From contig CATNEN010000002.1 of assembly GCA_950097015.1 (NCBI GenBank), forward strand, positions 2,480,001 to 2,544,000: a DNA stretch of 64,000 nt. Direction: 5' to 3'. The translations under genes and the position numbers were made by a program. Source of the stretch: Macrostomum hystrix. Its lineage: Eukaryota > Animalia > Platyhelminthes. The notes under the pieces were generated by a model that saw only the letters and a program-made list of their open reading frames with translations, was not told the origin of the DNA and did no database searches. Shown here in pieces: positions 5,041-56,149 of the stretch (positions within the stretch are counted from its first letter, which is position 1; every line of letters begins with the position of its first letter).

Positions 5041-5114
5041 GCCTTCTGAACAGGCGGTGTTAGCTGGTGTTGGTGTTGTTGGCTAGTGGTGGTGGATTTA
5101 ATAGAATAAACGTG

Positions 5115-5781: not shown

Positions 5782-8700
5782 TCAGAGTGGACTGTTAAGA
5801 ATAACTCCGAATAACGATCTCTCCACGTCCCAGTAGTTGCTCTTATATTCCGCCTTGCCGAGAGAGTTCTCAGCGGAGCACACGTAGGTGCCATACGCGT
5901 TGTCGCGGCCGATGTTCTCTGCAGTTGTGAAGGTGTCAAGCGATGAAAATTTGGGAGTCGAAATGCAGTGTCACTTCAGCCAACACCTTCTGACTAGTTT
6001 TCTCTAGAATATATTCTGTCTTAGACGGTTCTATTTCTTCGCGGTAATTCCATGGACTGCCCATACAATTTATAGCACACGGGAAACCCACTTTACGGAT
6101 GCTTTTCAACCAATGGGAAAACAGGAATCATTTTCTCTATTTGTCCCTATTTGTTAATGCGCATTAGATCATTCGGTGGAAATGGTGAAATTATATTTTA
6201 GAAAATTATGATACACATTTTTCTTTTGATAATTTCAACAGCCTCACAAGCTATATTTTGGCTTCCATCCATAGGAAGCCAAAATCAATATTAATCCCTC
6301 CATATTGATAAATATTTTATTAAGGCTATTAAAGCCTTATCCTCTTAAGTCCATGGACTGAGGGGGACGCCACACCACCCTCAATTGCCCCACCTAATGC
6401 TGGTACAATTAATACAAATGGATGAAGCGAAGCAATTTAAAGATAAGTGTATTGCTTATCTTTATAAGTTGTTCTCTCTTTAGAGTCTCTATCCCTGGAC
6501 TCTGATTTTATCAGGTTCTAAACCGGACTCTCTCGCTGGGGTCAGGAATCGAACTTCCGACCTTCAAGTCGAGAGCTTCACGCTCTAATCACAAGGCTTC
6601 AACCACACGCGCTGATTGGTTGAACCAATCAATCTAGATAAAACGAGTAACAAGTTCACAAACCTATCTACCAGCTATGTTACTTCCTTATCGCTCCTTT
6701 CCGATTGAGCAAGCGAGTTGATGTCCTTTCCTTACCTTTTGGTAGTCTGAAATGGAAGGGGTGTTAGAATAGCCTTTAGAATCTGTTTGTGTACTTCAAT
6801 TCATTAAACCACAATGCTTCTAAATCTAAACACTCACTTGTAAACTAGCTGCGACCCGTATCTGCCGGAGTCATTTTGGTCGAAAAAGGTCTTCTCATAC
6901 TGCCTGATCCACCTTGGGGTCTCCAGTTGAACATTGTCCGCGTCGCGCTTGGTAATATCCAGATCCGGGTACGGGTAGCCGGTAAAGAGGCATTCAAAAT
7001 AAATATCGCCTTCTTCCGTCTTCGTGATGTAAAAAATGCCGTAAGTCCCTTGCCTCAACTTGCCTTCGCCAGGTCGGGCTAAGGGGTCGAGGTTAAACGT
7101 ACTTTAGCTTGACTAACGCATTTAGGAATGTCAACTTAAGACTCCAGAATGGAGACCTATGGTCAATCATCGAACCAAATCAACTGAAATCAGCAGCTGG
7201 TCGATCCAGTTGACCCAGGGTACCCTGAAATAAAGCGAACCCTAATACTGAGCGAAACCCATTTCCCTGACTCCTGAGCACACAGCACACAGATAAAGTA
7301 CACAGACCCTGATTTCAGGTAAAGTACTATCTTACTGAACCTAAAGCTGGCCCTAAAGCGTGCCTACTGTACAGCTTTTACATCTTCCAGCAGAATCATG
7401 TTGCGCGAAAAGCTCTTACTTTGCATGAAAGCCTTGATGGGCACCGACTGAATAAGCAGATCTTCAACGCCCGATACGTTGATGAATGACCTGACGGCCA
7501 CGCACATGAAAATGCCCGAATCGCTCACGGAGCCAGTCTGCAGCGTCAGTGTCGCCTTGCCGCCCTCCAAACGCTTTTTCATGCCGGAAACCTCGGTGGC
7601 AGTGCCGGCTTCCCTCTCATCATAGAGGCACTTGTAGTTCTTGCACTTTTGTGGGTGTGTGTGTGATACAATGCTTGCAAAAATATTTAAAATAGAACGG
7701 CTATTTACAGGGCTCTCCAGTTTAACCTACCTTGACCCAGTCCAGGTAGCGATATGTTTCTGAATTTCTATCCACTTCTGCGTCGTAGTTCTGCAGAGTG
7801 CAGGTCAGCTCAATCGGTGGTCCATCGCGGCGCAAATCGACGATGTCCGGATTTCGAATGATCAGCGAAGAGTCATTCATTGTGACGACGATGTTGGGCC
7901 TCTCGGGAATCGCTGGAGAAAACGATGGTGTGCGAACATTATCTTAGTGGAAGGCTGGTGGGACTCCTTCTAAACCGGCCGATCTCTATCTGTACGGACT
8001 CACAGACTGGTTCTCTGACTCACTGCTTTGGTCTTTTCACTCACAAAGATTTAGTAGGCCTGTGCTTAGAGATTCAGGCACTAATCTGGAGGTCGGGAGT
8101 TCAAACATCAGCAAAGAAGAATTAATCTGTATTCTCGATTCGCAGCCAACGGAGAGACAATTCAGCACATTTCGCTGACTTCAGAACATGCACAGGTACA
8201 TGGATACTGTATACAGGCACAAAGTCACAGGTGATTGTATCTGTTTTGAATTTTCTTCAGGCAGTGTACACTCTCAATGTACCTTGGGGTTCGGCTCTCA
8301 AAGGCATAAATGGCACGACAAGCCCCGAAGCCTCGGAATCGAGCTCAGGGACATTGGTGCAGGATGGAAACTTATAACAAGTTTCTAGACCTATGTACAA
8401 GTCCTATCAACGATAGGAACGGCGATTCTGGTGTGGCCGTCAATGACAAAGGACGTGGAGGACTTCGTAGCAACGTGTGACAAGTGTCAGAAGACGGCTC
8501 GAATCCCGATCAGCCACCGGGTGCAGCTTGTGCTAGTGCCTCGAGTGGAGGAGGCCTTCACTAAAGTTATCATCGACCTAAGCGGGCCGTATCCAAGGAC
8601 GGCGAGCGGTCACCAGTACATCCTGTCAGTTATCGACGCGGTTTCCAGAAGGATTCCCTCTGCGTAAGATCGACGCGGAGTCGCAGGAACGAGAGCTAAA

Positions 8701-11700
8701 GCCCGTAGATCAGGTGCTGCTGCTGTTGCCATCGACAGCCAAGAAGCTCCCCGCTAAATGGCGCGGCCCCTATGAAGTACTGGATAAGTGCCGCGAGGTA
8801 AACTAGCGAATTCGGATTGGCTCGGCAACCAACACGTTCCACATCTGCTCAAGAAATACAACGCGCGACAGTCGATTCTGATGCAGCTGTCAGCGGCAAC
8901 GACGGGTGCTCCTGCGCTGTCCGACCGTCTGAGCCCGGACGAGAGGGACCGTCTCCAGCAGCTGGTGCTGGACTTCGCGAATGTCTTCAGTGAGATGCGG
9001 TGAAGCACCGAATCTGGACGACATCTGACCGCGTTGTGCGCATCCAGCCTCTGCGGGAGCTGCAGGCGCATCGATCAACAGGTGCTCCAACAGGAGTTCC
9101 AAAGCATGCTGGACCTCGAGTGATCGAACCGTCAGAAAGTGACTACTGTTCTTCTGTCTAGTGGCCAAGACGGACGACTCGGTCCGATTCACTGTCAACT
9201 TCAAGGTGCTGAATAAGCTGGTGGCTTTCGATTCCTACCCAATGAAGAACATCGAGGATCTGCTGGAGCGAGTCGCCAAGGCCAAGTTCATGTCTAAGCA
9301 AGGGCTACTGGCAGATTCCTCTGTCCGAGAACTCAAAGCGGCTGACGGCATTCGCGGCCGGTGGCAGGCTCTACCAATTCACCGTACACTCGTGTGTTTA
9401 AACGACAGAAGTGCAACGCGCCAGAGGGCTGGTCCAAACTGTTCCAAGGGCTGGGCAACGCAGACTCATGCCTCGACGACATTGCCATGTTCAGCGATCT
9501 TTGAACAGCACGTTCACGACCTGAGGGAGGTGTTAGGCCGTTTCCAGGCTGCCGTTCTGACGGTGCAGCCACGCAAATGCTACCTGGGCGGCAACTCGGG
9601 GGACTACCTCGGCTTCAAGCTCGGCGGAGGCCAGATCGGCACGAGCGAGGATCGAGTGCGGACTGCACAGGCTCGACCCCTGACTAAGGCCCAGCTGCGA
9701 TCAGTGCTCGGAGTGCTCAACCAATACCATCGGTTCGTGCCCGGCTACTCCGACAAGGTGGCAGCCCTGACGGACCTCACGAAGATGTCGGCGCCTGAGG
9801 ACCTAAGAGCGGCCTGGGGAGAACAACAGACTCGAGCCTTCCAGAAAGTGAAGTCTCTGCTGGCGAGCGAGCCGGTACTATGCGCGCCGGATTGCAGTCG
9901 GCCATTCATTCTGGAGACGGACAGCTCGGAGACCGGCATCAGCGCGGTGCTAACGCAAGAGTTCGAGGACGGCAACCATCCTGTGCTATTCGTGTCACGG
10001 CGTACCTGCAGATGGACCACACAAACCCGCGGCTCCAACGGTGGGCCTTCTATCTGTCTGGCTACGACTACGAGATCCGGTACTAGCCAGGCAGAAGCAA
10101 TACGGTGTCCGACGGTCTCAGCCGCATCTGGACTGATTGATTGACCAAATGATTTACTGACTGACTCAGGATTGAGTGACTGTCCACGTGATTTATTGTA
10201 CCAGACGGCTCAGTAACTGACTTTGCATTGCTGCTTGTTTAGTCGATTTTGCAGGACTGTGGGATCGATTGATTTGTAGTGTCTTAGTTTGACCATTTTA
10301 ACTCAAGTTTTACTGGTTCCTGCGATTCAATTCTGACTTGAATTATGGTCCGGATTCCTACTTGCGGTGCAGAAATTAACGTCAACTTTTTTGTACATGC
10401 CCGTGGAGTCGTTGCTATAAATAGATGTGTGGTGTGCTCAGAGGCGGTTTGGGCCTCCCTGGCTCAACTTGGAACCTGTGAATCGTGTGTCGATCATTCT
10501 TACTGGGATCAAAGAATGCAACAAAGTGAAAACGTCATTATTTGATATTACTGCTCGAAGTAAAAACTACGTAAACAAACTTACAATCCGTCGACTCGGA
10601 GCTCATGTTGATCGACTTGGTTTCGTGCGCAACGTCGTTTTTCGCATTGCAAGTGAAGGGCACTTGGTGTACCTGCTTGTCCATAATAAACGTAATGTTC
10701 GCGTAGCTTCGGATTCCGATCTGACCCTCGTCAGCCAACTGTTAAAATAAATTCGGAATGTGTGAAGCTAGTCAAAAAGCTACATTGAATTTTGAGGCTT
10801 TCGCAGTGCACCACACTGACAGGGACAAATGTGGAACAGTAATACAACCTGGAGGGAGTTTGCCTGTGCAAGCATCCGTGTCGACTGATGCACAGTCTGT
10901 CTGTCTACTGCCCGTGGGGGGTTAGAGGCAGAGCGGTAGCGGTCTAACGCATTTGCCACTCGCACCAAGGTCCCTGAGCTCGATTCCGCGGCGAGGCCAC
11001 ATTCATTTGGGGCGCAGCCGCAGAGGATGCCCTTGAGGGCCAGCCTCCGAGGCACAGTGAGAGTATACACTGCCTGACGATAAGAAATTCAAGGCGATGT
11101 ACACACCTGTGTGGGCGTGTGCATGCGCTGTCTGTGTCTGTGTGCTTGTGTGCTCAGGAGTCAGCGGAACGGGCAGAATTGCCTCCTCGCTTGCTGCAGG
11201 TATAGTGTGATTAAATTATATGCTATTGTTTGCAGCCCTCCTGCAATTAATATAATAATAATAATTATTATTATTATTGTTGTTGCTTTTATGATTAATT
11301 GTGCATCCTAAACGCATTTTTTACTGGCGGTGAGTCGAATGTCATCAATTTTGTACAAAATAATTTCAATACTTCAAGATCCAGAACACTTACAACCACG
11401 CCAGGAACGCTTGTGGCATTCTTCCCCAGAACATCCCACCAGACCTTGGCTGGCGGCACAGCGTTTTCATCGTAGCAATACAACCACTGACGCCTGCGAT
11501 CGATGAAAGTCTTCTCCGCCATGATGTATTTCGGTACGGGCTTCCCTGAAGGTGTAAATCGAAGCGAAGAGTGCCTATAACAAATACTATATGCTTCAAA
11601 ACTGCCTAGCCAGGGCCACAAGTTTTTTCGTTCGGCTGAAGCTCGAACTCCAAACCTCATAGTAAGAAATTCGAAGCTCTAACCATTGAGCTAAAGCCAC

Positions 11701-14700
11701 TAGCTCCAAAGTTACCCCTAGCTCCAGCTCATAAGCTAGCTTTCTTTCCAATTTAGGCCTGGTACCTCTGGGTACAATGATGTAGACGTTGTATTCCATG
11801 ACCTTGGAGAACTGCGCCTCGCGGCCAGGTTGAAAGAAGGTGTGGCAACGGCAATAGTACATGCCAGATCTGTCGTGCTTCAAGCCGGTGATGTTCAAAT
11901 TCGGCTCAGTCTCCGAGTACAATGGGATCATCTTGGGCCGATTGCGTCCGAGCAACTGCCGGGAACTTTTCTGCGGCGTGTACACCCAGGAATAGCGATG
12001 ACATGGCAGCCCGTCGTCATCCAGATTGTTGCTGAGAGGCAAGCATGGTAAGATGAACTCAAAACCCTCAGAAAGAGCGACGTCTCTGGTGTCTGCGAGT
12101 TTTGGCAAGACTTCAATGTCCGCTTTCTTTGAGTCAAAATTGGACACCGATATTGTTGACTCTGGCTGGCGCTGGCAGCTGAATGTGCCCCAGTGCTCCA
12201 CGCCCAGCGGGTTCAGTACAAGATCGTCGCCATCGCGAGACACTCCAGGCGGTAGCAAGTCTGCCTCAGTCTCGTCCATCGAGCTGTAGCGCTGCTTGTT
12301 CTGCGCGCCCAGAGGATTCCCCAGCGATACCGCTGACTTTGCGTTGGCCGGCGTGAACTTCCAGTCGATGGGAATGCTGACCTTGTTTGGACTGCGGACG
12401 ATCTTATTGCACTTGAGGCGCACCGCACTGCCCACAGGCTGCTCCACCTTGCTGGTTGGTGACGTCAGTTCCCAGTTAAAGGGCTGCCCTGTATACGGGA
12501 GACAAAAGAAATACTAAATCCAATGAAGGCATGTCTATATTGGCGATATAATCAAGACATGTGAAGTGGGTGCTCAGATTTGAAACGGTGAAGTACGAGG
12601 ACATAATCGCTAAAGAATCATAGTCACGAGGGTCGGGTTTAGGAGCGGAGCAGAGTGCCTTTTTCAGTTGAAAAGACCTCCGGGTACTGAAGTATTTCAA
12701 CACAAAATAATATATTTTTCTGCATCTACCTCGTACAAAGATATGAACAATATCTGCTTTTACAGAGAAATGTTTGTTGTCCTTGTCGCCAGTGTCTTCG
12801 ACACGAGATTCGTGCGAATTTATCTATAGATTGAATATTGAGTACATTCATGAATTCAAATTAAACTGTCTAGTTGGCACACTTACGTGGCTTAAGAATG
12901 ATGGGCACTCTTCGACTAATAGTGACATTGTTGACCATGTCGCTGACGTGGCATGTCCAATAGCCGGTGTCATTGTCATTATTCATGTCGTGGACGACTA
13001 TGTCCGTAAAATTGGCGCCGTTGGCCTGCTGCTTGATGGCTTCGAAGCGCTCCGAAAGACGCCCAGTAGGGAACGGGAGCCGTGTCAACGTGGCCCTGAA
13101 CTGGGCTGGTCGCGACGGCTGCATTGTGGAGTGGACGGTTGTGAGTTATTGTCAAGTTTCTCAAGTTTTAATGTCACTTAGAGAAGAGCGACGAACCTCC
13201 ATGGGCACAACTGAGCACTTTAGAGTGGTGGTGTCGGGGTCCTTGGGATCGCTTCGCAGCACCACCCTCTTCACCGAGCTGCTTTGCACCGTCAGGTTAG
13301 AAAATGCCACTGCGGACCCGGATCGTCTGTTGAAGCCTTCGCATCTGTACCGACCACTGTCTGACGGGCTGGCGTCCTTGATCACAAGGCGGGTCGACTT
13401 CTCATCGCGCACCTGGTAGATTCGGGACGTATCTGCCAAACGACGTCCATCAGAGTCCTGCCACTCCAGCAGCCAGGCGATGCCGTTGTAGCCGGGTTTT
13501 TGTCGCCTGACCAGGCAAGTCAGCACCACTGTACGACCGGACGGCACATTCAGGGTCTCTGGCTCCACGGTTGGAACCACGTCTGTGAATGCATCGGCCA
13601 CGGAGTTGACAGTTATGGTACACAACGTGCTGATCCCTGGATCTTACACACAGTAAAAGATCCTTAGATATGAACTGCTTTGAATCTGGCTCACTTTATA
13701 CAGCTTTTAAAACTTTGGATTTACACTGGACATGTTAATTTTGTGAACCAGCTATTTATTTTCTTGTCCGAGAAGTAGCGTATTCATGAAGAGAAAAATT
13801 TGCAACAAAAATTGACAACAGTTTTTCTGCTATCAGTTTCAAGATCCAGACTAACTAGATAAAACCTGCATGCGATGCTGCAAATTCCCATCATAGCGTG
13901 GTCTAGCCTTAGTCAGCAGTGGCTCTTATTGACCAATTTGACCAATTTGACCAATTTTAATATGAGCCGATCAGCTCGGCTATAAACAGCACCCATAAAG
14001 GCAAAACCAGTGCCCTTGATATCGCTATTATATACTTAACACATTGAACTCGGCCATTCAATTTGAATGGAAATAGTTAGGTTGAATGGAAATGGAATGG
14101 AAACAAAGCTATTGGTTAGCTTACACTCTTCACAATCGGGTCGCTGTCCTCTTGGTCGGCCCACAGTCTTGTCTGCATAGCCTTCCTCGCAGCTGAAATC
14201 GTTGAACAAGGAGAGCAAGCAGTACATGTACCATGCATGAATGAATGCTTGTTTCCTATGTAGAACTTTCGCTTTTCGAATGTGAAATCTTATCTAACCA
14301 CGACTCGGCAAGCGCCTATTAGACTCTGCTGAGGTACTGAGTTTTTTACCTGATTTTCCTCCTAGACTCTTAATAACGAACCAGGTAATTTGAAGGCTAT
14401 TTTATCTTCTGTCTGAATTGAACTGTTTCTTGGTCTTACGTGTCACAACGCGGAGAGTTCCTGTAGCCTTCTAGGCAGGGAACACACTTCCACCTGTTCA
14501 CAGTTGAGTTGTAGTCCACAATCTTGTGGAAATCTCCGGTTGTCTTGCAGTCCTGAAGATGAAATTGTTAAGTCTTGATATAAAACATTTGCATTACGGT
14601 TTGCTGCCAAACCATTTGGTGATATCAGCTTTGAGTTTAGCTTGTTTCAATTTTTAGTTACATCGGTCTAGCTTGCAATCAACATGCACTTCGCTCGTGA

Positions 14701-17700
14701 CTACTTGATGCTAAATCAAATTCATGGTACTCCACAATTTCAGCTGCGGAGATAAAAATTTCAAGAGCCAACTTGTTTCTTGTGTCGCAGGTTCACATGT
14801 CTTATTGAATGCTCAACAATATCTAGTTGCTATCGGCGGTTTTGCGCAGAGGTCACAGCTGCTGTTAAAACCTGAAAATGCGCCCGGCATCTAACGCCTA
14901 ACGCTCTTCTACAGATCCGACGAAGATGTTTAGGTTAATTCTGTTTGCGCAGAAAATCTATTTGCGCAGAAAATCTATTTGCGCAGAAAATCTATTTGCG
15001 CAGAAAATCTATTTGCGCAATCTTTCAGGGGCCAGGTTGCTGCCCGAGCCACCGCCTGCCGCCTGCAGCTGCTGTTAAAACCTGAAAAATGCGCCCAGCA
15101 TCTTAGGAGGCCCTGGGAAGTGGGCGGCATTGCTACAAGCGCTGGTAGTGATGCAGCAGCCCACGATTTCCATGAATGGAGTGGATGAAGGCAATGATGC
15201 TGACTTGCAAAGATGCAGAAATGCAAACGTGACTCCTGGTACGGGTTTAGTCTTTGTTATAAAAGCAAGGAAAAACTGCTTTGACCCTAGATTTGCTTGC
15301 TGAACCCTTCTGCCGAAATTCAGGTTTCTCTTGTCATTTGTCCCGTCCTATGCGAATCATTTGCTAAACCAGCTTTATCAGTTGTAAAACTGCTCCAAAG
15401 TGATCCAGGTGCTGGACCCAAGCCTTGCATTTTCCGAGGTTCAATTGCAAATAGCTGCTTCTCTGACAAAAATTGTGAATTTCCCCTGTCCCTCGGCTCC
15501 GAAGATTCGCGCAACGTTAACGTCAACTGTGACCTTGAAAGGGCACCCGTATTCTGGATATTGGCCTTACCTCGCAGAAAGCGCCCTGGTAGGGATCGGG
15601 GCAAACAGTGCAGCGCTCTACGGGAGCTGGTTCAGCACCCGAGCTGGTGTTGGTACTTGACTGGTACGTGATGTTCAGAATGCGAACGTTCATCTGGCCC
15701 TGGAATTGGTAGATCCGGAAGAAAATTCCACGCAGATCAGCGAGGGCGGTCATCACGTCCATTCTAGTGACGGCTGAACCGTCGATGGCACGCAGGTTCT
15801 GCTCGTCGAGTGTCACGTAGAAGCGAGTCTCTGGGGCGCGTTTGGTGATTCGGTCCCAATGCACCAAGGTCTGGCCTCTCCAGCCCTGATAGTTGGATAA
15901 ATAAAATTGCATTTGAATGTAAATAACAGATGCCATTGTAGTGCAAAGCACTCTGATTTTTGAAATTTGCTAAATATGACTCAATCAATCAATCTTCATC
16001 TCAAGCGCGTTCGTTGTTAAAAGTCTTTCATTCTGCTCAGCCGTTTTTTCACCTTTCCCAACGGCCCCTGTCAATTTTAGCATAGACGCTGTCGCCGTAC
16101 CTTGATGCCGAAGATTGGGAACGCCGTATCGGCCCTCAGCGCTGTGTCCATGCGCACGTTGACTCGCACGGTGAAGCTCAATTTGCCGCCGTAGGCTGCC
16201 AGCTGAAAATGAAAGTTCACACGATTTCTTTTATTTTTACATCACTAACTTGGATTCAGAGTGTCCCAGACTGTTGTCTAGCCGTACCCGCTTGCCAGAC
16301 AAGCTCGTCAAGAACACGTAGGACTCGTCATCGTCTCGCAAAGCTGACGAGTCGTCTCCAGTTGGGGCCACGGCTATCTCCGCTCCGGACTGTACTGTGA
16401 GCTTTGCGCGCGAAGTAGCGTCCTCGTACACTCCGTACAGGCCCCAGCCCATCAAACGCACCGCGGATGCTTCCACTGGTACTCGCTTCTGCAGTCGTGT
16501 GTCAAATGAAACCATGTACAGTTGATAAGCATGTTGAGACAAATTTATTAACCTATTCTAAACTGATGAGAGACTTTTCTGTACCTCTTCGAAGTAAAGG
16601 CCGGCATTTTCGCAAGCATTCGATCGGTCGGAGCAGAAGCAGGGCACGCATCCATCCGGGTGGTCCCGCCTGAGACTGTGGAAGCCCGGCTTGCACTTGT
16701 CACAGTTTTCACCTTCAACGTTCGCCTGAATTCGAAAGATGAAACAATTTCCTATCAGCTTTTTTCGTTGCACTTTATGCTCATGTGGCTTTGTACTTTT
16801 AGTATTTTCTTTAGGATGAAACAAAATCTGCAGTCGGCTGCTCACCTTGCAATTGCAGACGTTGTTCTGGCAAATGCCGCCGATGTTGCAGGTCTTCTTG
16901 CAGTCGATGCCAGTGGCGACTAAATTCAGTTATCAAATCTTTGCTCAAACTTTTCTCAGTGCTTGCCAAGAGCCAGCTAGTCTTTAATAATTATACTAAA
17001 AATGAAATGCCTGCTTGCTTGCTGCAATCGAGTAACTCCGGAAGGGCTTTACCGACTTTTATAACTCCTTGACTAAAATATGGCCATACGCTTCTATAGA
17101 GCATTGGTTCTCTGATGCTGGGGCGCATTGGTTCTCTGCTGCTGGGGGAGATTAGGGTTTTTCTGCCTAGGTTGCCAGCCCTTAGGTGATTATGTTTGGG
17201 GCCAACAGGTGGGCGGCGTATCAGCTTATTAGGAGGACAGGTTCAATTTGCATTAGAGGATTGTATAAATCCTGATATTCTGCCTGTGCTCCCCTGAGGG
17301 ATTTTACTAAACTATGAGTTATACTCAGACCAAGTAACCTATTGCTAGTAAAACTAATAACATATTGTGTATTCATTTGAATTGACGAAACGCAACACTG
17401 CGTTAAAGGTTAATTAGTTTAACTATTTAATTTTATGTTAATCTTATTCAACACCAATTGAATGTTGGTTTTCGCTTTCATCTTTATCTTACTTGCCAAG
17501 CGAGAAACTTTACAAGACATCTGAGATCGGTTATTTGATTCAAAAAGTATGTACAATAAATCCCTTAAAATTTATCTCATGAACAAAACTCACGTGGGAC
17601 CTCAACAATCGGTACAGGATTCGAGTATCTCCTTGTGCCAGACGGATCCACACCTGAACACCTGTACCAGTGATTCGTATTCGCATCCGTACTCCTATTC

Positions 17701-18058
17701 CAAATTGGTTTGTGATAGAAGGTGCACAGGGTAGAGGTAATATTGAAGTACGGATCCTCCGGCGGCCCGATGGGATCATTGCGCGCGTTGCTAACGTGAA
17801 ACTTGATGTCTCGGAGGCGCTCATCAAAAGTGCAGTTCACTAATTTGGCCCAGTAGAACTGTGTGGGTTGGACGGTCACGCCTGAAAATTGAAGACAAAA
17901 ATATTTGCCAGTTATGAAATCAGAAGCTATTGTGAATAACAACAGAACGTACTAATCTGAATGGGGTCGTTGACGGCCAGATCTTGGGCGTTGGCGCTCA
18001 TTGGCGACAGCAGAAGGCCAAGGAATAGGCAGGCCAGGACAACTGCTGGCTGGCCCAT
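5782..18058 (-). CDS. Gene A: 19-exon secreted Ig-superfamily/laminin-B protein (perlecan-like, 1301 aa: signal peptide, Ig, LamEGF, laminin IV/B, LamEGF, 7 Ig)
   Basis: Hand-spliced GT-AG exons (minus): 18058-17953, 17881-17594, 16919-16846, 16725-16585, 16488-16288, 16202-16101, 15885-15571, 14552-14440, 14192-14125, 13636-13197, 13118-12887, 12488-11766, 11545-11394, 10738-10585, 7912-7731, 7645-7420, 7078-6838, 6746-6736, 5918-5782. Total 3906 nt, all phases compatible, no internal stop. N-terminus MGQPAVVLACLFLGLLLSPMSANA is signal-like. LamEGF CDKCKPGF..CVPCFC; laminin B LAAYGGKLSF..VMTALADL; Ig motifs such as DSGRYRC, DTGYWTC, RSGMYYC, YGTYVCSAEN. AATAAA about 190 nt after the stop (5588-5593). 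The acceptor of exon 10 could be 6 nt further upstream. Confidence 0.88.
8385..10140 (+). mobile_element. Decayed Gypsy-type pol with integrase upstream of RT-RNase H (Gmr1-like order)
   Basis: Order: zinc-finger CDKC..IIDLSGPYP..VIDAVSR, KWRGPY, RT (VNFKVLNK, GYWQIPL, LDD), RNase H (FILETDSSETGISAVL), ending PGRSNTVSDGLSR. Many deletions and frameshifts. Confidence 0.82.
10925..11285 (+). mobile_element. tRNA-derived SINE family 2 (copy 47230-47630 on +; inverted partial copies 8130-8370, 45200-45420, 7260-7370, 44050-44260)
   Basis: Head TAGCGGTCTAAC..GAGCTCGATTCC, (AAT/ATT)n tail, dispersed copies in both orientations. Confidence 0.7.
14943..15018. repeat. 17-bp tandem repeat TTTGCGCAGAAAATCTA
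   Basis: About 4 units, flanked by a direct repeat GCTGCTGTTAAAACCTGAAAA. Confidence 0.9.
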
Positions 18059-24530: not shown

Positions 24531-24924
24531 CGAGGAGTCAACAAAAGTTATCAAAGGGTCAGCATTATCATGAAAGATGACATCAAAGTTCGCCTACCCA
24601 CCTCAAGACCATACCTTGCCTGCTCTACCGGCCGCGAAGGATATTCTCGCTCCTCGCGCCTACCTCTCTCCTCTCAAAATGTACCAGAAGACGTTTTTGG
24701 TTCTTTTAAAACTTGTTCAACATCGCAGCTAAAAACCGACTTAAGCGCGGCCTGTTTATTAGTTTGTTTGTTTGTCCCTGATGGTCTCAATCTTTTGCAG
24801 ACAAAACTGCGCGTGTGTGCGCTGGTCGCTGTAGTGAGCCAGAGTGAGGAGCTCCTCCAGATCCGGGTCGTTTTGCAGCTCTGACAGCCACGCATCAAAG
24901 TCGATGCCTTCAGCAGACCTCCTT

Positions 24925-25275
24925 AGGGTCTCCAGTTGAACATTGTCCGCGTCGCGCCTGATAATATCCAGATCCGGGTACGGGTAGCCGGTAAAGATGC
25001 ATTTGAAATCCAAGTCGCCGGTGTCCGTCTTCGTGATGAATATCCTGCCGTTAATCCCCCAATCGTCGCCTTCGCCAGGTCGGGCTATGGGGTCGAGGTT
25101 AAACGTACTTTAGCTTGACTAACGCATTTAGGGATGTCAACTTAAGACTCCAGAATGGAGACCTATGGTCAATCATCGAACCAAATCAACTGAAATCAGC
25201 AGCTGGTTGATCCAGTTGACCCCTGAAATAAAGCGAACCCTAATTCTGAGCGATCCTGAGCACAAAGTACACAGA
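24925..25275 (-). pseudogene. Orphan fragment of a fourth paralogue (5' part of the RPGE Ig exon plus upstream intron)
   Basis: RPGEGDDWGINGRIFITKTDTGDLDFKCIFTGYPYPDLDIIRRDADNVQLET matches exon 7078-6838. The adjacent intron matches 7080-7300. The exon breaks off at about 24925. Confidence 0.85.
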
Positions 25276-35092: not shown

Positions 35093-36577
35093 ATGGGCCA
35101 GCCAGCAGTTGTCCTGGCCTGCCTATTCCTTGGCCTTCTGTTGTCGCCAATGAGCGCTTGTCCAAAACTTGCTCAAGATCCGGCCGTCAACGACCCCATT
35201 CAAATTAGTACGTTCTGTTGTTATTCACAATAGCTTCCGATTACTGGCAAGTTTTTTCTGTCTTCAATTTTCAGCCGTGACAGTCGAACCGTCACAGTTC
35301 GCCGGGTTCAAATTGGTGAACTGCACTCATGATGTGCGCCTCCGAGACCTCAAGTTTCACGTTAGCAATGAGCGCAATGATCCCATCGGGCCGCCGGAGG
35401 ATCCGTACTTCAATATTACCTCTACCCTGCGCACCTTCTATCACAAACCAATTTGGAATAGGAGTACGGATGCGAATACGAATCACTGGTACAGGTGTTC
35501 TGGTGTGGATCCGTCTGGCACAAGGAGATACTCGAATCCTGTACCGATTGTTAAGGTCCCACGTGAGTTTTGTTCATGAGATGCACGTATATGCAACGCA
35601 TTAGTTTTAGTACGTTTTGATAGAAAATACATTAGAAGCGATAATAGTTGTTAATCTAAAGCCCTGCACACACGGGCTTGTACAAGTAACGCGCAAGTAA
35701 CGCGCAAATAGATTCCCCCTTTGAGGGAGGGACGGAGTAAAGGAGAACTAGCTTTGAAGCCCTGACAAAATTACGAATTCCGAGTTCATTGGTGCTATTA
35801 TCAATGGACCAGTTGAAACCGTCGGCATTTTATATTTATAACCTTTAATGGAGTAGCACGTTTCATAATTTAAAATGAATAAAATATATATTTTTATTTT
35901 TGCTGCTAGCAATAGGTAACTTCAGGATTTCAGGATTTATACAATTCTCTAATGCAAATCGCACTTGTCCGAAATCATATACTGACTTTTCACTTTTTTC
36001 TCCTAATCGCATTTTAACTTTTGAATAAGAAATACTTAGTTTTGATAGTCTAACTCAACCCCTCATAAAAATGTCTCTGTAAAAATTCGGATCCTCAGAC
36101 GATCCACTGCAGCTGAAGATCATCGTGAAAGACACTTACGGCATGATGTACAAAGTGCAAAACGACAGCCTCGCGGTGACCGACACTGTCTACTCTCCGA
36201 TGGACTGGTTCTGGTGGACTGGTGCCGGCTACTATGACCCGAATGTGACCATATACTGCCAAATGACTGGAAATCCGTACGGCACGGACCTGGAGCTGGT
36301 GCACGATGATCCATACACATCGTCGGACGTGCCTGAAGTAATAAAGCAATGCGACAATATGCAGGTAGCGGCGAACATTGTCTACTGTCGGGTGCCAAGC
36401 TACGATAGGTACGCCGATTACCAATGGCAGTGCCGAGCTAAACAACAGAATCCTGAGACCAAAGCCGTGACATCCTACACAAAAAAGCTCGACTTTGTGA
36501 AAGTGCAGTCGAAAATCCGCATTCGCATGAAGTATTACAAGTGGTACAGCTTCAATAACCGCTACCTCACGTTCTAA
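35093..36577 (+). CDS. Gene B: truncated paralogue, signal peptide plus 2 Ig-like domains (293 aa)
   Basis: Exons 35093-35207, 35275-35562, 36099-36577. Exons 1-2 are homologous to gene A exons 1-2; exon 3 is homologous to 46727-46200. TAA at 36575 corresponds to TAC in gene C, and the ancestral GTAAG donor survives at 36628. Confidence 0.75.
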
Positions 36578-39500
36578 GTGATCCGCGGTGGAGTGGCGCT
36601 GATCCGATGCGACGCTAAATACGATGAGTAAGAATGCCCGAACAGCAAGAGAGCTAGTCCGCGCTCTGATTTTCCCGTGGTTGTACGATGATCTAGGAGG
36701 AGTTAGGGTGGCTGGGAGAACATCATTTACTATTTAGCTATTTTTGTTATTGAAATGGGTGGGCCTTATACAAGCGCTGACCTGCACTCATGAGAGAAGA
36801 TTCTTAAGGCGGGCGACAGAGTCGACTTAGATGACCGCTTAGCTACACGTGAGATTTCGCGGAAAGAGAGATGAGATGAAGGGAGGTTCAGCGGATGCAG
36901 GGAGTGGTCCTATCGGCCTCAGGCTGGCCAGTCCCACTCGTCCCATAGGCCACAGGCTTGACAGCCGTGCCTACCCCAAGCAGTGCTCGAAACCGGCTAA
37001 AAGTCTAAGAAGAGAGTCGGACTATCCGTGATCAGACAGGACAGGGCTAGAGAGCCTACTGCCGTCAGTAGCGTGTAAGTAACTGACTCCTAACCTTGGT
37101 AGCGGTGGTCGAAACGGCCCAGGCTCTTGTCACAGAAATGCGGAAAGGCTATTGGCAAAGCGGAAAATGATCTCAGGTAGCGCCACCACCCAATGCGCCT
37201 ACGTTGCCACCGCAGACATTTGGGAACTTGGGTCCCCGGAGTACACAGCTCCTAGTTTATCACGCAGATCTAGACAAGCCGAAAAATAGGGCATTCTGTA
37301 ACTTCCGTTTTAGACTGGGGTGAGAGCCCCAGAATGGATCGAGACACGCCTCAAAAGGGGATTCCTGAATTTGCGCCACAGGGGTCTAGAGAGGTGGTAC
37401 TAAGAACTCGAATAAAAATCCATAGCCGGAATCCTACTCATGAAACATCAGGCACATTCTTTACATTAGACTGCAGCCTACACATTAGGTAACTAACAAA
37501 TCCGAATCTGTGTGAGATGAGGAAAACAGAGGCAGGAGAGATTAAGCAGAACACTGGCTGAGTGATTACGCAAGCGAAAGATTCTTAGATCATCACTCTC
37601 GCTCCCGTAGCCGCAGTCGCGAGAGGGGGATAGGGGAAAACTTCATTGGCAAAGGAGTTCGACACGCACACCGTTGAACCCTCCCAAGAGGAAAAAGGAA
37701 AACCGGCTAAGAATTCCCCCAACCCTCAGGAAAGAGATGCACATGCTTACACTCCGCATTTTACCTGCAAATCCCTAGCTCCTCATTACTCTTATGCGCG
37801 CTTACAGTTGCCTTCCTGCCGCAGCCTTCAGCTCGGCATCACCAGAACCCGCCCCCTAGGCGATTAGCCACTCATGACAGAGGGCTGTCTAACGATAAAA
37901 TAAACGTAAAGAGGAGGCATAGTAAAAGGAATTAAGTTGTTGTAAAAGTAAGCCCAATAAGTTAAATGATGGCTATAAATTAGATAGTTTATTAGGCTAA
38001 ACAATTCCTAGCTCCCCTCCCACTAAATGCCGCCTAACTAATAGAAAGCCCCTTAGGAGCAATAATTGCAAACCGCTGCGCGGATTACTTATCTGGAGTC
38101 GCTTCGGCCGCGTGCTGCAATCCCGTTGTTCTCGGGGAAGAGGGCGGGGCAAGACAGCAAAGACCGGGAAGGGAAAGATGCTGCGAGTCGGCAGGGGGCC
38201 AACACGCTTGGAGCTCAAGGCTCAATTTAACGGCTCACCTAAAGAGGTGGCTCGCGCTCAGGGGGAATGGGGACAGGCAATGGGCCTGCGCTAGCCGTGG
38301 AGCTCTAAGCTCTAGGGTCTAAGCCCTAAATGGGTCTGGGGGATAAGTCCTGGGTCCGGTGGGACTCCGACCCGGCAAAGGTGAACCCGGCGGGGAGAAG
38401 GGGAAGAGCCGGTGGGAGAAAAGAGGTCCTAGAGGGAGCAGCGCAGCGCGCTTGCTTAAATAGGCCTTGCAGCACGCCAACCCCGACATCCATCAAAGCA
38501 ACCCACATTCGCGCCAGCCTGTCATCGAGGAATTGAAGCGGCGATTGCCGCCCCAATTGCCCAATGAACCGGCGGCGGGAAACGACAGATGTTCTGCGCG
38601 AACAGCCGTCGGCAGTCAGCCAGCGATTGTTACTCCGCCGGGACAATGGGAAGCGCAGGCGCCGACCTGCCTACAGTGACATTTACATGTATCTAAAAGG
38701 AGGAAGGTCATAAAGTCGAGCTGGGCTCGAATACTGTAAAGAAGTGGGGACATGAAGAATTAATGATCACTCATAACGCCCGACTGATTCCCGATATCTG
38801 ATCGCGGTTTGGAGGGGAATTATGGCCTAAACTACTCATACAATAAAAGTTATGGCCGAGATCAGTCATTCCTACAGGGGTCTAGACAGATCCAGGGAAA
38901 AGGGATTCGACGGCTACTTAATTCACCGCCGCCCCAAACCCGGCCCTAAGATTAATGATCTTGTTTGTGGCCAGCTGCTATGTGGGTCGCAATTATTGGA
39001 TACTAAAAAAATGAAAATTTCTGCTGGCTCACATTCCCACTCGATTCCCGCAGCACACTCCACATCATAGCTAATTGAAAACCTTTAACAATCTTTTTAA
39101 ATAGTGTCACTCGGATCTGCGACCTGGAAGCTGCCGGACACAGTCTGAGTGACATCATGTCCATTACTGGCCAAACGTCAGAGAGAACAACCCGTCGCTA
39201 TCTGGCGAGGCGGCGTGACCGTTCCCTACAGAAGAATAGTGCATCGGTTTCTTCTGCTCTTCAGTTGCGCTCTGATGAGGATGCTGTCGCCATCCCTGCT
39301 TCCGGTTCGGCTGTTGCTGAACAAGACGAGTCCGTCGCCATCCCTGCTCCTGACTCGGATGCCACTATCTCCATCCAATCGGGCCTGTGCTTTACCGGCT
39401 TCAATAGTCACGACAACCCTGTGACTAAGTTCAGTTTCAATGGATGCACGTTTAATCAGTGCAAGTTTAACTAATTTTTACTAAAACTAAAACTTGTTTG

Positions 39501-47100: not shown

Positions 47101-48461
47101 TTTGAGGCTTTCGCAGTGTACCACTGCCTGACAGGGACAAATGTGGGTGGAACAGTAATACAACCTGGAAGGACATTGCCTGTGCAAGCATCCGTGCCTG
47201 TCTACACAGTCTGTCTACTGCCCGTGGGGGTTAGTGGCAGAGCGGTCTGACGCATTTACCTCTCGCACCAAGCTTCCTGAGCTCGATTCCGTGGCGAGGC
47301 CACATTCATTTGGGGCGCAGCCGCAGAGGATGCCCTTGAGGGCCGACCTCCGAGGCAAATTGAGAGTGTACACTGCCTGACGATGAGAAATTCAGGGCGA
47401 TTTACACACCTGTGTGAGCGTGAGTCTGCGTACAGTATCTGAGTGCTTGTGTGCTCAGGAGTCAGCGGAATGGGCAGAATTGCCTCCTCGCTTGCTGCAG
47501 GTATAGTGTCACCAAATTATGTGCCGTTGACTGCAGCCCTCTTGCAATTAATATATTATTACTATTGTTTGTTTAGTTGATATTATGAATTTTCTTATTA
47601 TAAATATTGTTATTTTTTTTCTTATTATTAAGTATCCGTGTGCATCCTAATAACATTTTTTACTGGCGGTGTGGTAGCGTGGGTCTGCTCAGTTGCTCCG
47701 CTGAGTGTAATTTACAGTGCAGGTGTACACCTGCACGCGCTCGTGTGATTGACTGACGCTTTGTCAGACAACCTTTATTGTTGGCCAGCTATGATAAATG
47801 CAAGCTCTCTGCCTTTGGGGGGGTCTTACTCCCGAAGTGGAGTTTTCACAGGCGGCGAATCGAACGTCGTCAATTTTGTACAAAATAATTTCAATCCAGA
47901 TCCAGAACACTTACAACCACGCCAGGAACTGTAGTAGCATTCTTCCACCAAACATCCCACCAGACCTTGGCTGGTGGCACAGCGTTTTCATCGTAGCAAT
48001 ACAACCACTGACGCCCGCCATTGATGAGAGTCTTCTCCGCAATGATGTATTTCGGTACGGGCGGCTTCTCTGAAAGTGGAAATCGAAACAAAGAGTGCAT
48101 AGAACAAAGACTATATGCAACTTGTTTGTGCCAACCAGTCCAAAGGCTTGACCGTGACCTCTACAAGGCTTTAAAACTGTCTTGCCCAAGGCCACATATT
48201 TTTCCTTTCGGCTGAAGTTCGAACTCCAAACCTCTTAGTAAGAAGTTCGTCCGAATCGGCACACGTGTTTTTATTAAGCTTGACTTCATTGCTAAGGGGG
48301 ATTAAATATAGGAAAAACTGTTCTAGGATTTTTACAGAACTCAATCAGCGCCAGTTTTTTCAACGCGCAATTCACAGCCAATTTTAATGATTGCATCAGG
48401 GCCAGTTATTTAAGTGAGCACTCTAAAAAGAATTGTGCATAGCTGTGTGCATAGCTGTGTC

Positions 48462-51400
48462 TGTTTTTCAGTCAAAGACAAGAGAACCGGAAGGAAACAA
48501 AGATATCAACTTTTTTGTACTAACACTAGGTCAGGCCTCCGTAAAGCCTGCAGTCAACGCTGCGATCTCGCGCAGGCAATCTTTAATTGAAAAACAAACA
48601 AACAAAAAAACACAACACCTTTAATCTTATTGAACGTCCAGCAGCGCTTGATATACTATAAAAAATGGGGTGGCTGGCGCACGCGGAAAGAATGTACAGT
48701 AAGGGCCGACACAACCTTGGCATCCATGTACCTAGGCCGAGAAAAATAATAATAATAATTTTGCAGAACAACGCAGCCCGACAAATAATAACCATCCGAA
48801 CATACCTCCCTTCCTGATAGAGCACTATCAGCAAAAAGGCGAAAACCAAATCCCACACAACAAAGAAGCCGTGCAACAAAACAAAAAAGCAAATATGATA
48901 AACTTGATAAACTCAAAACCGAGAAAACATTAGGAACGCGGATTACAGGCTCATGAAACTATTAACCGCCGATCCCGCAACTAATGACAACCAACACCAA
49001 AAGGAATAATGAAACACTGTAAAATCACAAAGGCAAAATTTTCACTACTTCATAGCTGTAAAGCATTTTTAAAGAAACCATAACCGACAGAAATCTTTGC
49101 GCAAAAAAATGGTTGACCAGCGAAATCCTTGAAAACACAAGACATTATTAGTGCAAATATGCGACATAAACGATCTAAAGCGAAAAACTAGTCCTAATAC
49201 CCACAATAGCAGGAAAACCATGCAAAGACTATGCAAAAGGCAACGGTTAAACCATTAACAACAGCATCAGAAATTCAACAGAAACACCAATTAATCCAAA
49301 AAGCACAACATTAATTAACAGTTTGTACTTTCACAAGACAGTCACTTTCTGAGCAATCACTGACCATCACGCTGAAGGAGACACAATCTAGTCACTGGCC
49401 GCAGCACAGGCCCACCGCTAGTTCGAAGCTTCGCAACTCGCACGCGGCCGTCCCGGCCAGGGAAAACTTCGAGCACCCGTCCGAGCGGCCATTGTCCTCG
49501 CGGAGCGTTCGGTGTCAGCACCAGGACGATGTCTCCAATGGCTAGGTCGGGCTGCTCGTTGAACCACTTGGACCTCGCGTTGAGCCTGGGGACCCATTCG
49601 CGCAACCAGCGGTGCCAGAAGTGCCGCACAAGCTCCTGAACACGTCGCCACCGTCGTCGTAGACCTTGGTTGCTTTCGTTCTCGGCTTCCGGAGCAAAGT
49701 CGCCGCCCAGCTGGCCATGTAGAAAATGGTTGGGTGTCAACGGAGTGTCGTCCTTCGGATTTGAGGTCTGGTACGTCAATGGCCTTGCATTGATTAGGGC
49801 CTCAGCACCAGTGAAGGCGGAGTGCAACTCCTCGTCCGTGATGTCAGCGTTGCCAAGAATCGCGTGCACGGCTCGCTTGGCGGCGCGGATCATGACTTCA
49901 TGAGCCCCACCAAAATGGGGCGCGGATGGAGGCTGGAAATGCCACTTGATGCCACGCTCGGCTGCTGACCGTCTCAGTTTTTCTTGCTGCTCTCTTTCGA
50001 AACTCCTCAGCTCTCTTTCACCCTTCACAAAGTTTCCACCATTATCGGAAAATACTTCCAACGGCTTTCCTCTGCGATTGATCATTCGGGCGAACGCATT
50101 TAAAAAAGAATCCGAATCCAAACCATACGCCATCTCTAGGTGCACTGCTCTCGTTTCCAAACAGGTGAAGAGGGCCAGGTACCTCTTCTGGCGTCGTGTT
50201 CCACGTCCCTGCACCGTCTCAAATGGGCCTCCGTAATCTACTGCGACGCAACTAAATGCTCGAAGGGACTTTCTGAGCCTTGCTTCCGGCAACGGCGCCA
50301 TCTGCTGCACCTGCGGCACTGCCTTCTGCCTTCTGCAGTGAGCACACTCCTTCTCCCATTCACGTATAGCTTCGCGACCACCGATCAGCCAAGACTTAGT
50401 TGAAAGCGCGGACAACGTCTGGTTCGTCCCACCATGCCCTTGCTCTTCGTGGTAGTGCTTCACCAGCAACTTCGTAGTCCAGCTTCGCCTCGGCAGGATG
50501 ACTGGATGCTTGGCCTGGTAGGGCAGATTTTGGTCGAACTTCAGTCTGCCATCTACGCGCAAAAGCCCCGCACTGTCTAAAAACGGCTGCAGACAGCGGA
50601 GATGACTGGTTGGTAGGACCGGCCTCTCGGCACGCACTTGACGAAGCTCAGCGCGGAATGCTTCTTCCTGCGCTCTTTGAAGAATAGCTTCCTCAGCTTC
50701 TTGCAGTTCGTCGACACTTAGTTCACCTTGACGACGCTGACCCAGTGACACTCCACAATTAAAGATAAAGCGCCGAACCCAAGCCGTAACACTGCGCAGC
50801 CTCTTGTAGCTGGAAAATCGTACTGGATCCAGTCGCCACTCGACCTCTGGTACTTCATCAGCCAACATCGTCATCATGGCGACACTTGAACCGCTCTTCA
50901 TCGCTTCCCGCCGCACTTCCTGATCTCCACCATCTGCCATTGGAACCAGCTTCTCCGGCCAGTTTTCCTCCTCCCCTCTCAAAAAAGCGGGTCCTTCCGT
51001 CCAGACTGCGGACTGGCAAAGCTCTTCCGCGCTGCAGCCTCGTGACACGACATCTGCAGGATTGTGATCAGTTGGTACATGTCGCCATTGGTTGGTCCTC
51101 ACCACCTCTTGAATAAGCGCAACCCGGTTCGCTACGAAAGGCTTAAAAATCCGACTCCGACCTCGCAGCCACCAGAGCACATTAGTGCTGTCACTCCAGA
51201 ACACCGCTTCCTTTAACTCCAAGTTGAGTGCCTCTGCTACCGTCTGAGCTAGCCGAACGCCAAGCACTGCTGCCATGAGCTCCAGTCTTGGAATGCTGCA
51301 GGTTGTCAGTGGAGCAACCCGTGCCTTCGCTGCCGCTTGCCGTACGCAGATTTGAGCTCCGGTCGTGCTCCTCAAGTAAATAACCGTGCCATATGCTAGC

Positions 51401-54400: not shown

Positions 54401-55465
54401 CTAGGCATTGGCTGTATCGATCGCGTTTCAGACCCCCCTTCGTGGGCAGTCCCATCAGCCTGCTTACCCCTGCCGCCTGATTCATCTCTCTCTAACTCGG
54501 CCCTCTCAGTTAAGCTTGTGCCTGCGCCAACTCCGTCTGCCTTGCCGGTAACAACTCTTAGCCGCTTTAACTCCTCTGCTAGCTGCTCGTTCCGCCGCCG
54601 GTAATCATTCTCAAGCTCTATCTGCGCACTCTCCAGCTCTAGAGCCCTCAACTCCGCCTCTTTACGCTGCTGTTCCAATCGCTTTTGTTCTTCCCTTTCC
54701 GCCAGTCGCGCACCTTCCTCTTCCTCAGCCGCAGCCTGCTTTCTACCGCCTTTTAGCATTTCCGTCATTAGACTCACTGTTTCACCGTAATCGCTCTCTA
54801 CGGTGTCCATCTCCTTCAGGGTCTGGTGACGCATCGGAATATTGTCGTCGGCGATCTCCAGCAGCTTCTCCAGTGCAGCCGTGACGTCGTCAAACTGATG
54901 CTCCAGCGTGGTCGCGAGTTGCTGCACTTCAGAAAAATGCTGGCCCCAGCTGCAAGTCGTTGCACGAGCCGATTTCTGCTTTTTGTAAACGCAGTCTTTG
55001 CCTTGGTCTTGTTGGCCTTGGCCTCCATTAGTTGAAGCTCTTGCTCCTCTGCGGCCGCGCTTGCCTGGTCTTCAGATTCTTCTGTTTCCTTCGGCATTTT
55101 CCTAACCACGCTCTGCTACCACTATGTTTTTCAGTCAAAGACAAGAGAACTGGAAGGAAACAAAGATATAAACTTTTTTGTACTAACACTAGGTCAGGCC
55201 TCCGTAAAGTCTGCAGTCAACGCTGCGATCTCGCGCAGGCAATCTTTAATTGAAAAACAAACAAACAAAAAAACACAACACCTTTAATCTTATTGAACGT
55301 CCAGCAGCGCTTGATATACTATAAAAAATGGGGTGGCTGGCGCACGCGGAAAGAACGTACAGTAAGGGCCGACACAACCTTGGCATCCATGTACCTAGGC
55401 CGAGAAAAATAATAATAATAATTTTGCAGAACAACGCAGCCCGACAAATAATAACCATCCGAACA
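48462..55465 (-). mobile_element. Near-intact BEL/Pao LTR retrotransposon in an intron of gene C
   Basis: LTRs 48462-48802 and 55125-55465 (341 bp, TG..CA, 4 differences counted). TSD GTGTC. PBS TGGTAGCAGAGCGTGGTT (55121-55104, tRNA-iMet-like). PPT AGGAAGGGAGGTA. Confidence 0.96.
49357..55097 (-). CDS. BEL/Pao gag-pol polyprotein (one frameshift near 54935)
   Basis: 1856-aa ORF: gag with three Cys/His knuckles, protease ALLDDAS, RT YMDD, RNase H, integrase (HHCC; VDYGGP..SDNG..E). The N-terminal extension from the ATG at 55097 is in another frame. Confidence 0.92.
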
Positions 55466-56149
55466 GTGTCAACTCCACTGGCGAGACAGTTAGTGCGAAT
55501 TTATAAATATGTTACATCACAGCTTTTCTCACCTGTGTGTGTGTGTGTGTGTGTTAGAATTGAATTGGTAAAATGTGCAAAGCAGACTTCAATTCAATGA
55601 TATATTGCTCAATGCTAGCGAGCCCTCCAATTGGCTGAACTATTGATCCACTCGCTCGCTCAACCCAGCCTTATCACACTAACACTCTTACCCCAGTTCG
55701 GACCTCCTCCTCGCGGTCTGTGGTTAGCCGCTGCAATGTCCACAAATGTACAAATATAACCAGACGAAAACCAGTAGTTTACCCCATGTCACTTGATTGA
55801 CACATTTTTGCAAATAATAACTGCCACTTTCTTAGCCCGTTACTAAACTGAAAGTAGGACAACCATTACTGTGGGTGGAAGTAAATTTTCCATTGATGTA
55901 AATTAACAATGATAAACCATTAATTATCGAAGTAAAGCATCAATTATCGAGGTGTTAGCATGAAGTTTTAATAGGGAAGGAAAATTTATCGAGAGGAAGG
56001 CATGAATTAGCGACGAAAAAAGAAATCGTCTAAGGGGAGCATAATTTATCGAGGAGTATTGGAAATTGTCGAAGGGTAGCAGAAATTTTTTAGGGAAAGC
56101 GATTTATCGACATGTAGTGCAAGTTATCGAGCGGGTTGCATAAATTATC

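Follow-up and report, generated by a model that had tools for sequence, protein, structure and literature searches.

The window analysed here is a stretch of 64 000 nucleotides from the flatworm Macrostomum hystrix (assembly GCA_950097015.1, contig CATNEN010000002.1, positions 2,480,001 to 2,544,000), in which self-comparison and tblastn searches with the exon peptides of one gene revealed three copies, termed A, B and C, of a single gene family. The predicted protein consists of a signal peptide (SP), immunoglobulin (Ig)-like modules and a block of laminin-type domains, and the copies differ in the modules that they contain. Our analysis of the assembled sequence supports the view that this differing module content would have been caused by deletions with ends in phase-1 introns, so that the junctions keep the reading frame. 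We consider it likely that the copies belong to a young, tandemly amplified birth-and-death family, in which module loss following the class 1-1 rule was combined with duplication and with exchange between copies. According to that rule (Patthy; reviewed in PMC8001218), extracellular modules are flanked by phase-1 introns, and recombination within these adds or removes 3n bases in frame.

Module content of the family

Exon-by-exon searches of the whole 220-Mb assembly, combined with a module map, revealed at least 13 family loci (lettered by position) between 2.46 and 3.62 Mb of one contig of 9.4 Mb. A survey of domain combinations across the genome had been proposed together with the original prediction, and it did bring further variants. 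With the modules in the order SP, IgN, laminin block, Ig1-2, Ig3-4, IgC2, Ig5-6, Ig7 and Ig8, the loci are as follows:

H and J: the fullest copies, with every module plus four further Ig-like exons that lie after the signal peptide and before IgN
Z: IgN alone missing, the other listed modules present
A and F: without Ig5-6
E: without IgN and without Ig5-6
I: without IgC2 and without Ig5-6
K and C: without IgN, the laminin block and Ig1-4
B: SP, IgN and Ig5 only, an architecture that the exon searches found once in the genome
D, G and Y: fragments

The extra N-terminal Ig-like exons lie at C2:3312642-3314480 (H), C2:3376983-3378648 (I) and C2:3340683-3341519 (J); at locus I, the stretch examined showed only the last two of the four. 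Across their mapped exons, Z, A, E, F, H, I, J and K each have a single terminal stop, exon 1 being unmapped for H, I and J and exon 12 mapped only partly for J. Both A (1283 amino acids) and K (680 amino acids) are intact. The module contents originally listed for A and B agreed with the tblastn results; for C, IgN had been called deleted, yet a 72-nucleotide remnant of it stays.

All variants can be derived from the H/J architecture by omission of modules, their order remaining unchanged, and across the 13 mapped loci no module was found to have moved or to have been duplicated into a new context. Since there are losses only, 'domain loss plus exchange between copies' is a more exact description than the 'exon shuffling' first proposed. 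The deletions had also been placed within one cluster formed by A, B and C. Genomic deletions in phase-1 introns they do appear to be, but they did not arise within this trio, the A-type deletion being present in E, F and D as well and the C-type deletion in K.

Intron phases and deletion junctions

Our exon model is based on GT-AG sites, reading frames and phases, and was checked across the 13 loci and against proteins of Macrostomum lignano. In this model, phase 1 is found at every module boundary, from SP through IgN, the laminin block, Ig1-2, Ig3-4, IgC2, Ig5-6 and Ig7 to Ig8, and the introns within modules are of phase 0 or 2. The three large deletions each run from phase 1 to phase 1: between introns 14 and 16 in A (i14-i16), between introns 2 and 14 in B (i2-i14) and between introns 2 and 12 in C (i2-i12). 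Adding the deletion of locus I, whose junction keeps the Ig4 donor and the Ig7 acceptor, there are four independent intron-to-intron deletions (A, B, C and I types), all four from phase 1 to phase 1. For two introns of the gene drawn at random, the probability of a shared phase is 0.22-0.34, which for four in a row gives, as a rough figure, ∼0.01.

At the A-type junction, homology stops ∼60 bp past the IgC2 donor and resumes ∼25 bp past the lost Ig6 donor. The place of the Ig5-6 exons is taken by:

8383..10522: insert of 2.1 kb that includes a fragment of a long terminal repeat (LTR) retrotransposon with a reverse transcriptase/RNase H open reading frame (ORF) at 9161-10144 on the plus strand

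Both A-type junctions are common to A, E, F and fragment D, and should thus go back to one event predating all four copies.

Gene B lies on the plus strand, with its open frame at 35093-36577 and its last exon reaching 36627:

35093-35207 (+): exon 1, signal peptide with a 9-nt insertion
35275-35562 (+): exon 2, IgN, 93% identical to A
35563..36098 (+): hybrid intron, in which 35563-35970 is the 5′ part of intron 2 and 35971-36098 the 3′ part of the IgC2-Ig5 intron
36099..36627 (+): Ig5 exon (1-2), interrupted at 36575-36577 by an in-frame TAA; the codon is TAC in all other copies

The original prediction had the second intron of B switch at about 35975 to the intron that precedes Ig5, and the switch was indeed found, sharp, at 35970/35974. 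Up to 35970 the intron is 93-95% identical to intron 2 of G, H, F, I and Y (patchily, 75-100%, to that of A), and from 35974-35987 onwards it is 93-96% identical to the last 112-125 bp of the pre-Ig5 intron in H, K, Z, J and C. Two to three bp of microhomology are present at the junction, and the right breakpoint falls ∼35 bp behind the IgC2 donor. On this evidence from the assembled copies, we regard the junction of B as that of a real deletion.

The hybrid intron shared by C and K (94-96% identity) consists of the start of intron 2, ∼1.3 kb of filler found only in C and K, and the last 180 bp of the Ig4-IgC2 intron.

It had been claimed that every module boundary used is of phase 1. This holds for the three large junctions but not for the loss of IgN, which is a 216-bp in-frame deletion inside the exon, with identical breakpoints in Z, E, C and K, i.e. 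in three architectures; in exon 2, Z and E share a further in-frame loss of 12 bp. Where the four N-terminal Ig exons have been lost ('...AVNDP' fused to 'IQI'), the frame is apparently kept as well, because the reading frame continues across the junction. Both the N-terminal four-Ig deletion and the IgN deletion are exon-internal, unlike the intronic breakpoints of A, B and C/K. In A, B, C, Z, E, F, K, G and Y exon 1 is short, seemingly because 1.6-1.8 kb were deleted in frame up to 10 nt before the donor.

Gene A and the exon model

Gene A is encoded by the minus strand, with its ATG at 18058 and its stop at 5782, and comprises SP, IgN, the laminin EGF/laminin B block, Ig1-4, IgC2 and Ig7-8, Ig5-6 being absent. 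The interval 10585-17594 to which the original prediction was attached brackets the variable part of A, not the whole gene: 10585 is the last base of the IgC2 exon (donor CGGATT/gtaagt) and 17594 the last base of the IgN exon (donor CCCAC/gtgagt). All features are on the minus strand, with phases in brackets:

17953..18058: exon 1, ATG and signal peptide (MGQPAVVLACLFLGLLLSPMSANAQ...), ends in phase 1, donor ATTA/gtacgt, conserved in paralogues
17594..17881: exon 2, IgN, 288 nt (1-1), from the splice model and paralogues
14125..16919: laminin block of seven exons, from Pfam EGF_laminin and Laminin_B matches, splice analysis and M. lignano junctions; exons 16919-16846 (1-0), 16725-16585, 16488-16288, 16202-16101 and 15885-15571 (each 0-0), 14552-14440 (0-2) and 14192-14125 (2-1)
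11766..13582: Ig1-2, exons 13582-13197 (1-0) and 13118-12887 (0-1), and Ig3-4, exon 12488-11766 (1-1)
10585..11545: IgC2, exons 11545-11394 (1-0) and 10738-10585 (0-1)
7912-7731 (1-0) and 7645-7420 (0-1): Ig7
7078-6838 (1-2), 11-nt micro-exon 6746-6736 (2-1) and last exon 5918-5782 (phase 1 to stop): Ig8

The AG/GT dinucleotides of this model are kept across the 13 loci, and in complete copies all differences in exon length are multiples of three. Five M. lignano proteins (PAA90335, PAA75708, PAA78466, PAA83589 and PAA50973), retrieved with one exon as the query, align with the model exon after exon and without gaps, and at the M. lignano locus the exon breaks fall at the same protein positions. 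BOX15_Mlig028090 and BOX15_Mlig024543 are homologues in M. lignano. Because the M. lignano annotation was built from RNA-seq data (PMC5730564), the exon junctions have transcript support in the sister species. The micro-exon ACTACCAAAAG, 11 nt flanked by AG and GT, is identical in the nine paralogues checked (9/9); it codes for LPK and for parts of two split codons, and the M. lignano protein reads YK-LPT-ENIG at this position.

Several other exon choices were tried and rejected. An acceptor at 5993 for the last exon, with which A would be frameshifted by a 2-bp deletion (5977-5965), is ruled out by the M. lignano protein and locus; with the micro-exon and the acceptor 5918 adopted, the deletion becomes intronic and A intact. 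Without exon 14552-14440, the laminin block suffers a phase clash between 15571 and 14192, and M. lignano sequence confirmed this exon. The acceptors 13642 for Ig1 and 7942 for Ig7 were unconserved or misfit to the M. lignano junctions and gave way to 13582 and 7912, the former consistent with the M. lignano junction DCEE/Y/VVP.

Gene C and its relative K

Gene C (minus strand, 59003-42635) contains SP, the IgN remnant, IgC2, Ig5-6, Ig7 and Ig8; all of the following lie on that strand except where no strand is given:

59003-58898 (-): exon 1
58825-58754 (-): remnant of exon 2, 72 nt, after the 216-bp in-frame internal deletion
48070..58753 (-): intron 2, 10.7 kb, made up of the hybrid intron, satellite arrays and a BEL/Pao element
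48069-47915 and 47048-46895 (-): IgC2
46727-46200 (1-2) and 45688-45462 (2-1) (-): Ig5-6
44961-44771 and 44685-44460 (-): Ig7
43853-43616, micro-exon 43524-43514 and last exon 42744-42635 (-): Ig8
48462-55465: BEL/Pao LTR retrotransposon, LTRs at 48462-48802 and 55125-55465
56150-57338 and 57680-57935: arrays of a 20-bp satellite in intron 2

K, 1.08 Mb away, has the C-type architecture and is intact. Compared to K, C has gained a 1.7-kb expansion of the 20-bp satellite and the 7-kb BEL/Pao element. As the array of C corresponds to about three units in K, it was expanded after the two copies split. The retrotransposon is probably a recent insertion, judging from its sequence: the two 341-bp LTRs have 98.8% identity, and the element carries an uninterrupted ORF of 1856 codons (Peptidase_A17, RVT_1, Integrase_H2C2 and DUF5641).

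Exchange and selection among the copies

The deletions of IgN and of Ig5-6 are found in all four combinations, i.e. neither (H/J), the first only (Z), the second only (A/F) and both (E), a distribution that argues for exchange between paralogues and, as far as the assembled copies go, would require recombination or gene conversion. Furthermore, the nearest paralogue differs from exon to exon. The second Ig7 exon of A is 99.6% identical to that of Z and 96% to those of E and F; its first Ig8 exon is 98% identical to those of E, F and H and 85% to that of Z. Segmental duplication may also have been at work: Z and A are spaced by ∼24 kb, E and F by ∼25 kb, and the two pairs lie 171-173 kb apart. 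Since at their 5′ ends Z resembles E and A resembles F, a two-gene unit was apparently duplicated over this distance.

Pairwise ratios of non-synonymous to synonymous substitution rates (Ka/Ks) lie at 0.24-0.57 for the laminin block and for Ig1-2, and reach ∼1 or more in IgN and Ig3-8, based on small numbers. The first Ig8 exon occurs in two or three diverged types (82-86% versus 97-98% identity), and between K and H it has 39.5 non-synonymous versus 2.5 synonymous differences (Ka/Ks ∼4.9). For IgN, identity between the two full-length types is 79%, the surrounding introns being ∼94% identical. This Ka/Ks pattern fits rapid evolution of the family, with patches that diversify. There were too few differences for Ka/Ks to tell whether B or C is a pseudogene, and this use of it was dropped.

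A patch of ∼20 nt in the Ig5 exon (36200-36240 in B, 46590-46630 in C) exists in three versions, shared by B/H, C/K and Z/J. These pairs cut across the gene types, which suggests gene conversion of a variable loop.

A scenario of module loss

The following course of events would account for these observations. The gene is built of blocks of one to seven exons, and each block has phase-1 introns on either side. Repeated breaks, repaired so that both ends lay within these introns, would have removed whole blocks in frame, namely Ig5-6 (A, E, F and D), the laminin block with Ig1-4 (C and K), the laminin block through IgC2 (B) and IgC2 through Ig6 (I). The resulting variants may have been copied by segmental duplication and reassorted by unequal crossing-over or gene conversion. 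Those preserving the frame could persist as intact genes (A, E, F, K, I, Z, H and J), and other rearrangements would leave fragments (B, D, G and Y).

Fragment D, an A-type copy, is found just past the end of the window:

62354-64000 of the window and on to C2:2544540-2549432: fragment D, with the first laminin exon, a partly deleted laminin block, Ig1-4 and IgC2

It has two frameshifts and has lost a donor; downstream of its modules come the retrotransposon fragment of A (99% identity to 8370-10016) and then the upstream flank of C. A piece of the family within the window is the following:

24894..25109 (-): orphan Ig8-type exon, 65% protein identity to A exon 7078-6838

The orphan exon may be, by inference, what remains of the 3′ part of a broken gene whose inverted 5′ part is B.

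Alternative explanations

Several points weigh against the scenario of frame-preserving module loss in an Ig-type family. Introns are ∼94% identical between copies, like exons, so that conservation cannot tell coding from non-coding sequence. The splicing of A, B and C and the single-base lesions rest, for M. hystrix, on the assembled sequence, and expression of any family copy is a prediction as well. The number of in-frame deletions is open to ascertainment bias, because out-of-frame variants may look like fragments. Overall pairwise Ka/Ks is 0.5-1.2, which alone is no proof of constraint. The junction of B is present in one copy only and lacks a second witness. The frameshift of C falls within a homopolymer (A5/A6) and may stem from an error in the assembly. 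Finally, IgN, Ig5, Ig6 and Ig8 gave no Pfam match as Ig domains, and the fold models of IgN and Ig5 are of low confidence (pLDDT, the predicted local distance difference test score, of 59 and 46), the IgN model being all-beta.

One alternative is that A, B and C are three functional, expressed paralogues, newly made as in-frame combinations by deletions in a local cluster, and that the deletions give open frames, as first predicted. The three junctions do all preserve phase 1; B retains its ATG, signal peptide, all splice sites and an open frame of 293 codons; and C matches the intact K except for the one base just mentioned. Yet disabling lesions stand out against the intact paralogues. In B, TAC is changed to TAA in the last exon, and 123 bp beyond that exon, at 36750, homology to the family stops and the gene abuts the inverted 3′ flank of C; moreover, all 10 differences between B and H in the Ig5 exon are non-synonymous (10/10), giving no sign of constraint. 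C, as assembled, is frameshifted by one A fewer in an A-run within 46350-46337, leading to a stop at codon 296, and its 10.7-kb intron is full of satellite and contains a young retrotransposon. The A-type and C-type deletions are also older than these copies, being shared with genes elsewhere. So the junctions keep the frame and A is intact, but B and C, as assembled, are not, and we think it unlikely that the three are newly made functional genes. From its assembled sequence, C is rather a K-type copy undergoing decay; B, which may or may not be expressed, is a truncated by-product of rearrangement.

Another possibility, which we hold to be very improbable, is an assembly artefact: chimeric joins or uncollapsed haplotypes might explain above all the single junction of B and the pairs Z/A and E/F, which are nearly identical (between A and F, identity is 98-100% in each mapped exon, the pairs are 171-173 kb apart and the region is rich in satellites and transposons), but all copies sit inside one contig, numerous substitutions and structural features set them apart, the junctions of the A type and of the C type each recur in several diverged copies, and the junction of B is clean, with the microhomology expected for a real deletion.

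Identity of the protein

Domain loss plus exchange thus being the preferred explanation, the nature of the protein may be considered. Pfam searches with the exons and the M. lignano homologues identified EGF_laminin, Laminin_B and Ig families. Ig1 is a clear Ig match (Ig_3, 1e-9; I-set, 1.5e-8) and Ig4 a weak one (V-set, 9e-5). Only the Y-x-C motif was aligned in a profile comparison with Ig1, and Foldseek searches with the IgN and Ig5 models gave nothing at E ≤ 0.001. One laminin B unit is present, for the exon of which perlecan provided the sole PDB matches (9i5b/9i5a), weak at E = 0.0015. No Pfam match to SEA, LDL-receptor class A or laminin G was found in the exons scanned and two M. lignano homologues, and the protein ends just past Ig8 without a membrane-spanning stretch. 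The predicted product is secreted and similar to domains III and IV of perlecan, and is not a perlecan orthologue.

Database searches, made one exon at a time, retrieved four of 1.84 billion proteins at E ≤ 0.001; the close relatives were from M. lignano only, with 67% identity to the query exon. A human origin of the DNA was rejected, as the nearest proteins belong to M. lignano and no part of the window resembles human sequence. A word-based protein search with an open stretch of 305 residues gave no match within the permitted length range, and a literature search on the M. lignano gene names found nothing. By its sequence the family is apparently multi-copy, fast-evolving and lineage-specific in Macrostomum.

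Comparison with known systems

The cluster is a clear and recent example of the textbook class 1-1 rule, by a mechanism that is already known. As the rule has it, all nine module boundaries are of phase 1 and the deletions end in phase-1 introns. Unlike in class 1-1 shuffling, only deletions are seen, and no insertion into a foreign gene; and unlike simple class 1-1 modules, several of the blocks are made of many exons with internal phase-0 or phase-2 introns, one block spanning two Ig domains. What the cluster adds is at least four independent deletions with readable breakpoints, intact and decayed products side by side, and variants that have been reassorted, which makes it useful for dating and quantifying gene conversion and the loss of domains in a family of recent origin. 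With domains III and IV of perlecan (HSPG2/UNC-52/Trol) the product shares a laminin EGF/laminin B/laminin EGF unit followed by a run of Ig-like domains, and a secreted nature, but it has one laminin B unit where perlecan has three.

KIR, LILR and CEACAM/PSG are young tandem Ig families of vertebrates, shaped by birth and death, unequal crossing-over and gene conversion. Their members differ in that entire Ig-domain exons have been lost in frame, and they are accompanied by pseudogenes and fragments. The architecture of the flatworm family is unrelated to theirs, since it includes a laminin block and lacks a transmembrane or signalling tail. Among invertebrates, the sea urchin Sp185/333 genes and the shortened Dscams of chelicerates (PMC5103432, PMC4835542) are clustered families in unstable, repeat-rich regions, with varying block content. 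Shortened Dscams are devoid of N-terminal Ig domains and diversify via 5′ cassette arrays, and the variation of Sp185/333 lies inside one exon. Neither one-exon variation nor 5′ cassette arrays were seen in the present family.

We may speculate that these flatworm genes encode a repertoire of secreted proteins for recognition, with a role in immunity or reproduction, in which module loss and reassortment would be joined by positive selection on short hypervariable patches of particular Ig modules. The Ka/Ks values given above for IgN, Ig3-8 and the first Ig8 exon, and the divergence of IgN between more similar introns, point in this direction. The odds seem to us to be against it; if it were true, copy and module content might vary between individuals, as in KIR/LILR or Sp185/333.

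Other features of the window

Besides the family genes, with their short GT-AG introns, the window contains satellites and retroelements. Arrays of a 20/21-bp satellite, related to those in intron 2 of C, occupy 19851-20894 and 22413-24533, upstream of A. The region 28020-33872 is GC-rich (58-64% G+C) and has two long plus-strand ORFs. The one at 29608-31128 has no Pfam match; the other, at 31266-33296, encodes a reverse transcriptase of the non-LTR type and thus points to an element resembling a long interspersed nuclear element. The 3′ flanks of A and C (10-6025 and 36864-42853) form a 6-kb duplicate, 93% identical and including the last exon. Within the duplicate are a 307-codon plus-strand ORF at 3364-4287, without a Pfam match, and a 25-bp tandem repeat at 5115-5357 and 41956-42198.

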